NCBI RefSeq assembly: GCF_006345805.1
Contig: NW_021824678.1
Span: 1-40,837 of the forward strand
Direction of reading: 5' to 3'
Source: Octopus sinensis
Taxonomy: Eukaryota
Length of the DNA stretch: 40,837 nt
Shown: piece after piece, positions 8,094 through 19,878 of the stretch
Layout: each line of letters opens with the position of its first letter
Position numbering within the stretch: the first letter of the stretch is position 1
Program-made: the position numbers and the translations under genes
Notes under the pieces: model-generated
Databases searched by the model: none
What the model was told of the DNA's origin: nothing
Seen by the model: the letters and a program-made list of their open reading frames with translations, nothing else

Positions 8094-8157
8094 TTCAAAT
8101 GACTTCTTGTAGGCTAAGTCTTCTGGGTTTGTTTTAAATCCACCAATTAACATTTTC
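8094..8157 (-). CDS. Copine-family gene, exon (C2B): KMLIGGFKTNPEDLAYKKSFE
   Basis: Acceptor aattatatttctaattcag, donor gtaagt; 64 nt, phase 2 to 0. Matches copine HDFIGEFTTSYRELAR...E. Confidence 0.9.
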
Positions 8158-8252
8158 CTGAATTAGAAATATAATTAATAATTATAATTAATAAGGTGTT
8201 CAATTAAAATTCAAAAATAGATTTCTAATCAAATTTAGAATATCTCTCTCAT

Positions 8253-9590
8253 TATATATATATATATATATATATATATATATATACATACATACATACA
8301 TATATATATGTAATTATATACATACATACATACATACATACATATATATACATACATACATACATACATACATATATATACATACATACATACATACATA
8401 CATATATATATATACATACATATATATATATACATACATATATATATATATATATATATATACATACATACATATATATATACATACATACATATATATA
8501 TACATACATACTATATATATACATACATATATATATACATACATATATATATACATACATACATATATATATACATACATATATATACATACATATATAT
8601 ATACATACATATATATATACATACATACATATATATATATACATACATATATATATACATACATATATATATACATACATACATATATATATACATACAT
8701 ATATATATACATACATACATATATACATACATACATACATATATACATACATACATATATATATACATACATATATATATACATACATATATACATACAT
8801 ACATATATACATACATACATATATAATACATACATATATATCATACATTATATATATATACATATATATATATAATACATACATACTTATATATATACAT
8901 ACATAATATATATATACATACATACAACATATATATATCATATATTATAATATACATATATATAATATATACATACATACATATATATATACATACATAC
9001 ATATATATATACATACATACATATATATATATACATACATACATATATATATACATACATACATATATATAACATATATAATATATATATCATATATATA
9101 ATATACATACATACATATATATATACATACATACATATATATATACATACATACATATATATATACATACATACATATATATATACATACATACATATAT
9201 ATACATACATACATATATATATACATACATACATATATATATACATACATACATATATACATACATACATATATACATACATACATATATACATACATAC
9301 ATATATACATACATACATATATATATACATACATACATATATATACATACATATATACATACATACATATATATATACATACATACATATATATATACAT
9401 ACATACATATATATATATACATACATACATACATATATATATATATACATACATACATACATACATACATACATACATATATATATATACATACATATAT
9501 ATACATACATACATACATACATACATATATATATATACATACATATAATATATATAATATATATATATAAATATATATAATATATATATT
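8253..9590. repeat. About 1.3-kb (TA)n/(TACA)n compound microsatellite
   Basis: Seen directly; generates the MYVCIYI-type ORFs. Confidence 0.97.
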
Positions 9591-9675
9591 ATAAAAGATT
9601 AATACTCATGAGAGATGATAATGTTAGTGGCCGCAAGCTTAAAACCGTATTGGCAAAATTGATATATATAAGAAA

Positions 9676-10635
9676 TATATAACAAGGGCGCTAAGAAGCA
9701 CTAGCTTTGCTAGAAACAGGAGTCAAAATTACTCCGAAGCCGCAAGAATTAACACTAGATTTTCTCAGACATGAATGGAAAGAAACTAAGTGAATAAGGA
9801 TTGCGTTTTATCTCTGCAAATCTGCAAGAAGGGATGCCAGTTAACATGCTATCATGATTAGGAATTTAGCGCCAAAAGCACTTGATTGTCTTCAACCAAG
9901 TCTCCTCATAATAATACCTGGATATCTCTTCAACCAATGCCTGTCTTCGTTTCAGGGTCCAAGACGCATTGAAAAAGACGAAGTGAATAAATTTATAAAT
10001 ATATAAAAACATTAATACTTATGTGAGATAATAAAGTTAGTGGCCGAAAAAACACAGGCATTAGTTGAAGTAGCTCATAAGGGCCGGTTTCCCGGTTTCC
10101 TTAGCGTATAGGTTCCCCACCTGAACGGGACGCCGGTCCGTCGCAGGTGAGCTGCAAGATGCAGGAAGAAAGGATGAGGAAAAATTGTGGCGAAAGAGTC
10201 ACCAGAAGTTCGCCATTACCTTCTGCCAGAGCCGCGTGGAGCTTAGATGCTTCGCTCATGAACACACATATCGCCCGGTCTGAGATTCGAACCTGCGATC
10301 CCTCGACCGCGAATCCGTTGCTCTAACCACTAGGCCATGTGCCTTCACATTGGTTGAAGTGATATACAGGTACTGTTATGAGCAGACTTGGCTGAAAGAA
10401 CCATGCGCTAAATTCGAAATCATGATGCCAGGTTAACTGGCATTCCTTCTTGCAATTTTGCAGAGGTAAGACGCAATCCTTATTCATTTAGTTTTTTTCC
10501 ATTCATGCCTGAGAAAATCTAGTGTTGATTCTTGTGGCTTTGGAATATTTTTGACTGCTATTTCTAGCAAGGCTGGTGCTTCTTAGAATCCTTGTTATAT
10601 ATCATTCTTATATATAACAAGGGCGCTAAGAAGCA
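9676..10635. repeat. About 260-bp inverted repeat pair (9676-9939 and 10348-10601) plus a terminal 59-bp hairpin (10577-10635)
   Basis: The reverse complement of 10348-10601 aligns with 9676-9939 (roughly 80% by eye); tatataacaagggcgctaagaagca occurs at 9676 and 10611. Confidence 0.85.
10072..10347 (-). mobile_element. tRNA-derived SINE related to family 3
   Basis: Minus-strand head gtgaaggcacatggcctagtggttagagcaacggattcgcggtcgagggatcgcaggttcgaatctc, with A and B boxes. Confidence 0.85.
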
Positions 10636-10921
10636 ATGAAAATATTTAAAACTCTTGTAAATTACAGCAGATTATTTGATGTTATTTTCAGTCACAATCT
10701 AGAAAAACTAGAGTTTCCAGGAAAGGGAATTGACCAGAAACACGCATGTCACAAGTACTATCTGTAAGCGGAAGAGTAAAAATATGCAAGAATTTTCTCA
10801 AGTTTGTTTTGTTATCTACGTTCCAACAATGGAAAACAGCTCCTTCATTACAGGAAGTCTCCAAATATTAAAAATTATAAGAGAACATATATATATTTAT
10901 ATATATATATATATATATATA

Positions 10922-16898: not shown

Positions 16899-17430
16899 CT
16901 GAAATGAAAGATGGAAGGATAATTATCGATGTAATTATAGATAACACACCATCGTTATCATTGATTAATAGTCAGTGATAACGATGATAATATGGTATTT
17001 ACAATGATGCTGTAGAGCTCTATGATGTTGCGGTATTACCTTATGATGATACAGATGGGGGCCTTTTGATGACACGATATGGGGTTTTGTTTAATGTAGT
17101 GAGTAAGCAGGAACCTAAAATCTTCTAGCGGTCTTTTATATTTCAGAAATTGATCCGCCGCTATTCTGGAGCACCGATTTCAGCACTGGTTTTTTAAAGC
17201 CTCATGCTTATTTTATATGTTCCCTGTTGTGGAGCCGCTAGATCAGGAAAACGTAAGCAAACTAAGACCGGTTATCAAGCGTTTGTCAAGTGGGAGATGA
17301 TTGGAAAGCAAGTATTTTATCTACTAACTATATATATATATATATATATATATATATATATATATATATATATATATATATATATATATATAATATATAT
17401 ATATATATATATATATATATATATATATAT

Positions 17431-17800
17431 GGCGGCAGTGGCTGTGTGGTAAGTGGCTTGCTTACCAACCACATGGTTCTGGGTTCAGTCCCGCTGCGTG
17501 GCACCTTGGGCAATTGTCTTTTACTATAGCCGCGGGCCGACCAAAGCCCTGTGAGTCGATTTGGTGGACGGAAACTGGAAGAAACCCGTCTGTGTTTGCC
17601 CCCTCCTCCTCTATCGCTTGATAACCGATGCTGGTGCGTTTATGTTCCCTTAAATTTCTGGTTCGGCAAAAGAGACCGATAGAATAAGTACTGGGCTTAC
17701 AAAGAATAAGTTCTGGGGTCGATTTTCTCGACTAAGGGTGGTGCTCCAGCATGGCCGCAGTCAAATGGCTGAAACAAGTAAAAGAATAAACGAATAAAGA
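17431..17800 (+). mobile_element. SINE family 1 following a (TA)n run
   Basis: Same head, body and tail as the other copies. Confidence 0.9.
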
Positions 17801-18687
17801 ACACACACATATATATATATATATATATATTATATATATATATATATATATATATATATATATATATATATTAGTGCAATTTATATATTAATTCCATGTC
17901 ATAACCAGTATTTAGAACTTCATGTACCTTATACGTTGAAATTCGTTAATCATCCTAGGGTTACTACAAATCCTTTGGTTGGAAATATATTACTTAGAAT
18001 GTAATTCTGGGTTCTTGCCCATAAGAAAATCCCCTAAGACTCATGAACCTGGTTACTCGGTCCCCATGGTGTATAAATTATCGATATCACCTTCCCACTG
18101 AATGCCTGGCTGTTGAAGAGTTCAAGACTAACAATTTTGTCGGGAAGGGACAAACTGAACATATCGACTCCAGTAATTGATTGATATTTTGTTTTATTGA
18201 TCTCGAAGAGATGGAAGGGAATATTGACCTTGGCAGGACTTGAACTCAGAACGTAAACTGCCAGAAGAATCTTACTAAGCATTTCGTTTGACTTACTAGC
18301 GATTCTACCAGTTCGCTGCCTTACAAACAAATATGAGTACCAGTAATTAAGCGCATAACCGGGTTTATTAGAGTACTAAATAACATCAGGAAAATTATTT
18401 ACATAATTTATAATTTTTATTATGATATATTCCATTCATATTTTCTACTCACTATTCGTGGGGTTCTATCAGAAGCAACTGTCATTGGAGTTTTTCTGGT
18501 ACAAATAGCTGACTACAAGGAATGACAACCCTGGACTCAGTGCGAATTGAGAGGCATTAGAAAACTTCCGTGCCGGAAATGACTTCTCCATTATGAACAC
18601 ATTCTTCCTGTACAGTATCTTTTATCTTTCACTTGTTTCACTCATTGGACTGCGGCCATGCTGGGGCATTGCTTTGAAGAATTTTTA

Positions 18688-19110
18688 GGCGCAGGAGTGG
18701 TTGTGTGGTAAGTAGCTTGCTTACCAACCACATACATGGTTCCGGATTCAGTTCCACTGCGTGGCAACTTGGGCAAGTGTCTTCTACTATAGCCTCCGGC
18801 CGACCAAAGCCTTGTAAGTGGATTTCGTAGACGGAAACTGAAAGAAGCCTGTCGTATATATGTATATATATATGTATGTGTGTGTGTGCTTATGTGTTTG
18901 TGTTTGTCCTCCCAACATCGCTTGACAACCGATGCTGGTGTGTTTACGCGCCCGTAACTTAGCGGTTCGGCATAAGAGACCGATAGAATAAGTACTAGGC
19001 TTACAAAGAATAAGTCCTGGGGTCGATTTGCTCGACTAAAGGCGGTGCTCCAGCATGGCCACACTCAAATGACTAAAACAAGTAAGAGAGTAAAAAGAGA
19101 GTAAAGAGTA
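18688..19110 (+). mobile_element. SINE family 1 (further family-1 and family-2 SINE pieces at about 18140-18325 minus, 19180-19410 minus and 19447-19675 plus)
   Basis: Direct similarity among copies in the window. Confidence 0.9.
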
Positions 19111-19780
19111 ATGAATCGACCCCAGTAGTTATTATTTTTCTTAAGCCTGGTAGTCATTCGATCAGTCTCTAAGATATAGGGACGTAAACACACCAACACC
19201 GGTTGTCAAGAGGCGACGGGGGACAAAAACAGACACAAAGATACCCACACACATGCATACACGCGCGCGCGCGACAGACTTCTTTCAGTTTCCGTCTACA
19301 AAATCCACTCACAAGGTTTTGGTTGGCCCGAGGTGCCACGTAGTGGAAGTGAACTCGGAAATATGTGCTTGGGAAGCAATCTTCTTACTACACAGCCACG
19401 CCTACACTTATCCCACGTATTGTAATTTATTATAAGAATATTTATAAGGTGGCGAGCTGGTAGAAAGAAGGCAGTGAGCTTGCTGAGACGTTAGCACGTC
19501 GGGCGAAATGCTTAGCAGTATTTCGCCTGTCTTTACGTTCTGAGTTCAAATTCCGCCTAGGTCATCTTTGCCTTTCATCTTTTCGGGGTCGATAAATTAA
19601 GTACCAGTGACGTACTGGGGTCGATTTAATCGACTGGCCCCTCTCCAAAAATTTTGTGCCTTGTGCCTAGCGTAGAAAATATTATATGAATATTTATAAT
19701 CTATTATAAAAAAATATTTAAAGATATTTCCCCGGCAATTTTATGATACTTTTTCGTTGAAAATAACTGAAAATACTTAC

Positions 19781-19878
19781 TTCCTTTCTATTTGTTTGTA
19801 CAAAGTTATAAAAGGACAAACTTGTGGGCTTCTTCCTTTTATATTTTTACCGCTCAGTCTTAACTGGACATCATATTC
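19781..19878 (-). CDS. Copine-family gene, exon (C2B start): EYDVQLRLSGKNIKGRSPQVCPFITLYKQIER
   Basis: Acceptor cttttctttctatctttcatcattcag, donor gtaagt; 98 nt, phase 0 to 2; joins 16794-16898 as aa|g = K then W. Matches copine V.L.F.A.KLDKKDFFGKSDPFL.F.R. Confidence 0.92.

Follow-up and report, generated by a model that had tools for sequence, protein, structure and literature searches.

The window analysed here, 40,837 nucleotides (nt) of Octopus sinensis DNA (RefSeq assembly GCF_006345805.1, contig NW_021824678.1, positions 1 to 40,837), carries on its minus strand eight exons (E1 to E8) of a copine-like gene. These exons encode a C2B domain, a linker and the start of a vWA domain, have ag/gt borders throughout and splice into a single open frame of 215 residues (645 nt). 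At all five positions where the C2B domain of canonical copines carries Ca2+-coordinating aspartates, the encoded residue is non-acidic. The exons are as follows.

E1: 19878-19781 (98 nt), minus strand; C2B strands beta1-beta3 and loop 1, EYDVQLRLSGKNIKGRSPQVCPFITLYKQIER(K)
E2: 16898-16794, minus strand; middle of C2B, (K)WEKLGTTDAVAYDTILNQQEINIPEKDFSDGDIH(K), with the CxGD motif kept and the NPxW motif lost
E3, long form: 13668-13618, minus strand; strand beta6 and first half of loop 3, (K)KLYLRCFRKKQILWIP(R)
E4: 8157-8094, minus strand; end of loop 3 and C2B strands beta7-beta8, (R)KMLIGGFKTNPEDLAYKKSFE
E5: 6410-6378, minus strand; shortened polybasic segment of the C2B-vWA linker, IKNKRWQTCGV
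E6: 4318-4257, minus strand; linker into the vWA domain, ISIEKFRLKPRIDYVKYMDT(N)
E7: 2249-2097 (153 nt), minus strand; beginning of the vWA (Copine) domain, MEIDVTLAIDFRLSNQDPKLPTSNHY...
E8: 1857-1779, minus strand; (T)NNRYHVYGFGAKKKETFEDLYPYFSI

E1 starts at phase 0 and has 2 nt left over at its end (borders ag/gtaagt). An upstream open frame with an ATG (MSKLITRH...), which would have made E1 the first exon, was rejected; that frame is not open in Octopus bimaculoides, and E1 is therefore an internal exon. No small linker exon upstream of E1 was found in a scan by motif and donor phase. At the other end of the gene the next exon, E9, lies just past the window start: in O. bimaculoides it occupies positions 36405-36533 of the merged locus, and window base 41 aligns to position 36330.

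The orthologous exons of O. bimaculoides were taken from CM046611.1 (59.547-59.597 Mb). About one third of this region is assembly gap (17 kb of 49.5 kb), and E4 and any exons past E10 fall within gaps. E1 and its orthologue differ at 9 of 98 nt. Three NCBI proteins were matched by the exon products, namely P0001 ('copine-9-like' of O. sinensis, 150 amino acids), which starts at E4, P0002 ('copine-8' of O. bimaculoides, 177 amino acids) and P0003 (an uncharacterised O. bimaculoides protein of 101 amino acids). These partial models from two octopus genomes are parts of one copine-like gene.

Copine identity and gene structure

Copines were gathered by a HMMER library search seeded with P0002, and a hidden Markov model (HMM) was built from 19 canonical copine segments comprising C2B and linker. 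Against this profile the spliced octopus product scored 28.8 bits with the long form of loop 3 and 36.4 bits with the short one, and its C2 part by itself reached 21.5 bits; that the short form scores above the long form reflects loop length only. The best of 1000 shuffled controls reached 8.2 bits (C2 part) and 10.4 bits (C2 plus linker). In a phmmer comparison, residues 8-207 of the spliced query aligned as one colinear domain to residues 164-368 of a vertebrate copine (E 2.8e-19). The arrangement is also that of the family, with C2B directly upstream of vWA, the two joined by the conserved linker, and the whole colinear with full copines.

BONZAI1 of Arabidopsis, a copine of solved structure (6KXK), aligned to spliced residues 119-202 (E 1.6e-9), which cover the linker and the vWA start, and the C2B part of the octopus product had no sequence match to this protein. 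The Pfam Copine model (PF07002, vWA) gave 26.1 bits for E7-E8; this value lies under the cut-off of 27, as no more than the first fifth of the domain, approximately the first 45 of 218 profile positions, falls inside the window. For the O. bimaculoides protein P0002 the same model gave 70.9 bits. Judged by the C2B profile scores, the shuffled controls and the phmmer alignment, the octopus domain is a genuine copine C2B homologue, albeit a very divergent one. In a set of 1.84 billion representative proteins, P0001 and P0002 were the only close relatives, and the next copines had at most 37% identity.

A literature search on octopus copines returned nothing relevant. No canonical Octopus copine was present among the best 120 matches to insect copine-8, and the reference taken for the gene structure was copine-8 of Aplysia californica (P0236, locus L003). 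In E1-E4 the introns are identical to those of the Aplysia gene in position and phase, and E6-E8 match it exon for exon. The correspondences are listed below, with the Aplysia exon first.

EQALIQFRAHKLDKKDFFGKSDPF...EDG: E1, at equal position and phase
(S)FTVV...NGDYD(R): E2, of equal length class and phases
(R)SIKVECHDWDADG(G), donor GG/gtgagt: E3 long form, donor AG/gtctca, at equal position and phase
(G)HDFIG...: E4, (R)KMLIG..., with the acceptor in equal place and phase
CINPKKQQKKGKSYQNSGTV: counterpart of E5, 27 nt longer than E5
153-nt exon at the vWA start: E7 (153 nt)

Since its introns are kept in place, the octopus gene must have arisen by copying of a copine-8-type gene at the DNA level. 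Of the C2B loops, loop 1 lies wholly in E1 and loop 3 in E3 plus E4, as in Aplysia, and no unseen exon encoding acidic loops is therefore expected. The discovery of such an exon was one of two results that the preliminary description had named as fatal to its proposal; given the shared intron positions and phases, it is unlikely.

Ca2+-ligand positions and loops of the C2B domain

In the copine profile the canonical Asp columns are HMM positions 17, 26, 82, 84 and 90. O. sinensis is non-acidic at five of five, in exons that are supported by homology, and the earlier claim of a C2B domain devoid of any Ca2+-coordinating Asp was thus borne out. Loop 1, KNIKGRSPQVCPF (19848-19810), contains neither Asp nor Glu; the same is true of CFRKKQ (13652-13635), RKMLIG (8159-8142) and NPSIS (from 12414), all on the minus strand. 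A check of orthologues, which had been recommended, agreed with this result: the O. bimaculoides gene reads KNISGSRPQVCPF and CFRKKQILWIP, and all four readable positions, which lie in E1-E3, are non-acidic, the fifth being in E4 and hence in an assembly gap. Since both species are non-acidic at these four positions, the replacements predate the split between O. sinensis and O. bimaculoides.

Loop 3 reads CFRKKQILWIPRKMLIG and is three residues longer than usual. It has five basic residues around an Ile-Leu-Trp-Ile core (FRKKQILWIPRKM). Together with the preceding strand (E3) it is identical in both octopuses, with 0 nonsynonymous changes in E3 (nonsynonymous divergence, pN, 0; P=0.026). Going by C2 domains in general, such a composition would suit Ca2+-independent contact with acidic membranes.

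Two versions of loop 3 had been put forward, of which one was retained. The alternative-donor form, CFRKKQILWIPRKMLIG, fits the ancestral gene structure, whereas the form beginning CFQNPSIS needs an unsupported micro-exon of 19 nt. The candidate for the latter, (Q)NPSIS(R) at 12416-12398 on the minus strand, was rejected because it is superfluous once the long E3 donor is used; the O. bimaculoides intron, as far as it is sequenced, contains nothing that corresponds to it. The internal donor in E3, GTAAGA at 13640-13645 on the minus strand (after 13646), is of consensus strength and conserved in both octopuses, and may give rise to unproductive transcripts.

These observations bear on the idea that the gene model is incomplete, that is, that another exon or splice form restores the acidic loops and that C2B is an ordinary Ca2+ sensor. 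The predicted E3-E4 intron is 5.4 kb long and in O. bimaculoides is partly assembly gap, and both the pair of E3 donors and the ag/gt borders of the micro-exon candidate could be taken as signs of further splice forms. However, the loop positions are encoded, without any Asp, within E1, E3 and E4, the micro-exon contains no Asp either, and the Aplysia gene places loop 1 in the equivalent of E1 and loop 3 in the equivalents of E3 and E4 with equal phases. An incomplete model is thus very improbable as the source of the missing aspartates.

Divergence between two octopuses and the state of the gene

The two species were compared over seven exons (E1-E3 and E5-E8; 579 nt), E4 being in the O. bimaculoides gap. 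In total 64 substitutions were counted. Stop codons were absent from the 645 nt of O. sinensis and from the seven O. bimaculoides exons (neutral probability 0.04-0.06), and there were no indels, exon lengths being identical (neutral probability 0.001-0.1, based on approximately 0.012 indel events per nt in the flanking introns). Splice dinucleotides were kept at 14 of 14 compared sites (neutral probability 0.07). Under strict neutrality the joint probability of an intact frame and intact splice sites is approximately 1e-4 to 1e-3. Substitutions were spread unevenly: apart from E3, which lacks protein-changing ones, a run of 32 residues across the junction of DGDIHKKLYLRCFRKKQILWIP and IKNKRWQTCG is unchanged (P=0.007). 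Our reading is that the frame is still being kept intact while most residues can change freely or are being pushed to do so.

The interpretation we favour, with somewhat better than even confidence, is that of a still-coding, relaxed or fast-evolving copine-8-type paralogue restricted to Octopus, whose C2B domain would be Ca2+-insensitive, basic and hydrophobic, and which is not a conserved new sensor. The C2B domain keeps its copine framework, with all five acidic Ca2+ ligands replaced. A C2B domain without the acidic pentad would be unable to act as a canonical Ca2+ switch, and, if the protein is made, the cationic and hydrophobic loop 3 could plausibly contact acidic membranes or partners without Ca2+.

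A number of observations weigh against this interpretation. Even at E<=10 the Pfam generic C2 model did not match E1-E6. Loop 1 is variable, three of its residues differing between the octopuses (K to S, R to S and S to R). Of the earlier proposal of a Ca2+-independent C2B domain with basic loops, the loss of the five ligands and the conserved basic and hydrophobic loop 3 hold good; the proposal is weakened by the variable loop 1 and by the approximately neutral rate of change, the lost MIDAS Thr and the fragmentary gene models described below, and is thus supported in part.

The remaining adverse observations are at the same time arguments for a decaying relic, either an unprocessed pseudogene or a copy being lost, in which the missing aspartates would be a symptom of a general loss of constraint; points (ii) and (iv) and the transposons in (vi) are further arguments for a relic. 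(i) The ratio of nonsynonymous to synonymous divergence (dN/dS) was 1.11 overall, with 0.80 for E1-E3 (C2B) and 1.41 for E5-E8 (linker plus vWA), and 43 amino-acid changes were found compared with 44.7 expected from random substitution. (ii) Divergence of the exons (11.0%) was not lower than that of flanking introns (8.9%). (iii) A second metal site is eroded besides the Asp pentad of C2B. The MIDAS (metal-ion-dependent adhesion site) motif of copines consists of D-T-S-T-D residues in vWA (PMC10968396). The DxTxS part of this motif reads DFRLS in O. sinensis (codons 2221-2207, minus strand, E7), with Thr replaced by Arg at 2213-2215, whereas O. bimaculoides keeps the Thr (DFTIS). In O. bimaculoides, IHFDI stands in the region of the GPTNF threonine, and the TD of LIVFTDE has been retained; these last two MIDAS residues are located beyond the O. 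sinensis window. (iv) The polybasic C2B-vWA linker is 9 residues shorter than in Aplysia copine-8, and the NPxW motif is lost. (v) The NCBI models in both species are short, disconnected fragments running into introns, none of which joins E3 to E4, and no further homologous proteins, predicted or transcript-derived, were found in two large libraries. (vi) The introns are filled with transposons, and splicing from the internal E3 donor straight to E4 leads to a premature stop (CFRKC*). (vii) No C2A exon was matched in the 21 kb upstream in the window or in the 10 kb upstream in O. bimaculoides, either by tblastn (14 copine queries) or by a C2A HMM applied to all open fragments; genuine C2B exons, tried one at a time, likewise stayed at noise level, and single divergent exons are undetectable in this way.

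A decaying gene accounts for the missing aspartates nearly as well as does a new function independent of Ca2+. Frame disruption and loss of splice sites, by which a pseudogene may be recognised, were absent; the neutral substitution pattern was present, though uneven among exons. The intact frame is poorly explained by a relic whose decay began before the two species separated, in view of the uninterrupted exons, the retained splice sites and the low joint neutral probability given above, and the invariant stretches speak against such a relic as well. We regard a relic, or a gene now being lost, as a serious possibility, albeit one to which we give less than even credence.

Also considered was positive (diversifying) selection on a functional paralogue, for example in a recognition or conflict role, in which case the loss of Ca2+ control would form part of the adaptive change. 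E7 is the fastest-changing exon; its pN of 0.16 exceeds the intron value of 0.089 (P=0.005 uncorrected, approximately 0.04 when corrected for seven exons), and E2 follows the same trend (P=0.07). Maintenance of the frame and the alternation of invariant with heavily changed blocks would be in line with such selection. Against it stand the overall rate, which is compatible with neutrality, and the basis of the comparison, which is two species with small counts and no outgroup; we consider it improbable. Hardly less doubtful is the more elaborate idea of a cephalopod-specific copine-8 derivative that acts as a Ca2+-blind module, permanently tethered to acidic membranes by its cationic Trp loop, with the vWA face under diversifying selection, and that would serve as a lineage-specific adaptor or recognition protein.

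Should the protein of the favoured still-coding paralogue be made, it would be an animal copine with a membrane-targeting C2B domain cut off from Ca2+, and it could help to separate Ca2+-dependent from Ca2+-independent roles of copines. Where a lineage-specific copy evolves neutrally, ligand loss calls for expression data before a new function is read into it.

The exons lie in AT-rich DNA with abundant microsatellites and transposon remnants; the GC content drops to 0.20 between 8001 and 10000. Compound TA/TATG/TACA microsatellites form long blocks at 8195-9100, 37200-38200, 40100-40540 and other places. A short interspersed repeat, recognisable by a shared translated string, is present in six or more copies, at approximately 19064-18645, 17760-17465, 13231-12893 and 5176-4913 on the minus strand and at 6834-7225 and 35050-35432 on the plus strand, and the repeat also occurs several times in the O. 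bimaculoides locus. The other elements are as follows.

10978-12029, minus strand, inside the E3-E4 intron: remnant of a Tc1/mariner-like transposase (DDE_3, E 1.5e-10); adjoining frames encode an HTH-like N-terminal part, and the frames are broken
22135-25839 and 25901-29613: direct tandem duplication of 3.7 kb, 99.5% identical, each copy with a broken Tc1/mariner-type transposase (HTH_Tnp_Tc3_2, DDE_3)
38354-39700, plus strand, and 35994-36885, minus strand: reverse transcriptase fragments (RVT_1, E 4.6e-16) of long interspersed nuclear element (LINE) type
254-775, plus strand: Mos1/mariner-like transposase remnant with weak matches to HTH_48 and DDE_3
869-1006, minus strand, in the E8-E9 intron: open fragment ...FWNPVWKSFSVNKSSTLCNS..., weakly similar to the copine C2B segment LNPxWxxF...LCNG (E approximately 0.1-0.4)

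Both 3.7-kb duplicates map to one stretch of O. bimaculoides, and the duplication is therefore either recent or an assembly artefact. The two LINE copies are related to each other and have the peptide ...SQAIQNPEDTKHLQCELD..KWAEKNSM in common. The fragment at 869-1006 ends a tandem repeat of three copies beside mariner remnants, and its syntenic counterpart in O. bimaculoides (35334-35471 of the merged locus) also scores weakly; the resemblance to a copine is probably due to chance.

Comparison with known copines

Both C2 domains of copines have highly conserved aspartates, and C2B drives Ca2+-dependent membrane association (PMC10968396). In BON1 (BONZAI1), both the C2 domains and vWA contain functional Ca2+ sites (PMC10968396). 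With canonical bilaterian copines of the copine-8, copine-5 and copine-9 type the octopus gene shares the order of C2B, linker and vWA, and the motifs CxGD, LIG, DYV/DYI, AIDF..SN...P.S.HY and GFGA. It differs from them in overall identity, which is approximately 32% compared with 55-60% among canonical orthologues across phyla, in the absence of the five C2B aspartates, in a loop 3 with three additional residues and in a shorter loop 1 region. The lost NPxW motif, the linker shortened by 9 residues and, in O. sinensis, the lost MIDAS Thr set it further apart.

To place the loss of ligands among copines, 59 representatives with recognisable C2B and linker were surveyed at the five positions. 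Five acidic residues were present in 28 of them, two or fewer in 17 and at most one in nine. None at all were present in three copines, those of Rhizophagus clarus (P0079), Actinomortierella wolfii (P0077) and a marine protist (P0116); 'Copine-8' of the sea spider Nymphon striatum (P0055) has one. These four proteins resemble the octopus copy in having no or one acidic residue at the five positions within a recognisable C2B-linker-vWA arrangement. They differ from it as independent losses, in fungi, protists and a sea spider, with other replacement residues, and the RKKQILWIP loop occurs in none of them. Loss of Ca2+ ligands from copine C2 domains is recurrent and already known, and the octopus gene adds another case; it is this repeated loss that the locus mainly illustrates.

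In its primary structure the octopus domain has the features of a Ca2+-independent C2 domain, with the acidic ligands gone and basic residues in their place. A comparable copine is copine F (CpnF) of Dictyostelium discoideum, in which all four aspartates of C2A and one of C2B are missing, three of them being replaced by Arg (PMC6048903). The two proteins are alike in that each has a C2 domain without Ca2+-binding aspartates and with several basic replacements. In CpnF, however, the domain that lacks all aspartates is C2A, C2B being short of one, whereas in the octopus it is C2B; moreover, CpnF is expressed and still translocates after a rise in Ca2+. Membrane binding of CpnF in vitro is mostly Ca2+-independent (PMC6048903), and CpnF is the closest precedent for the Ca2+-independent membrane contact proposed for the octopus C2B domain.

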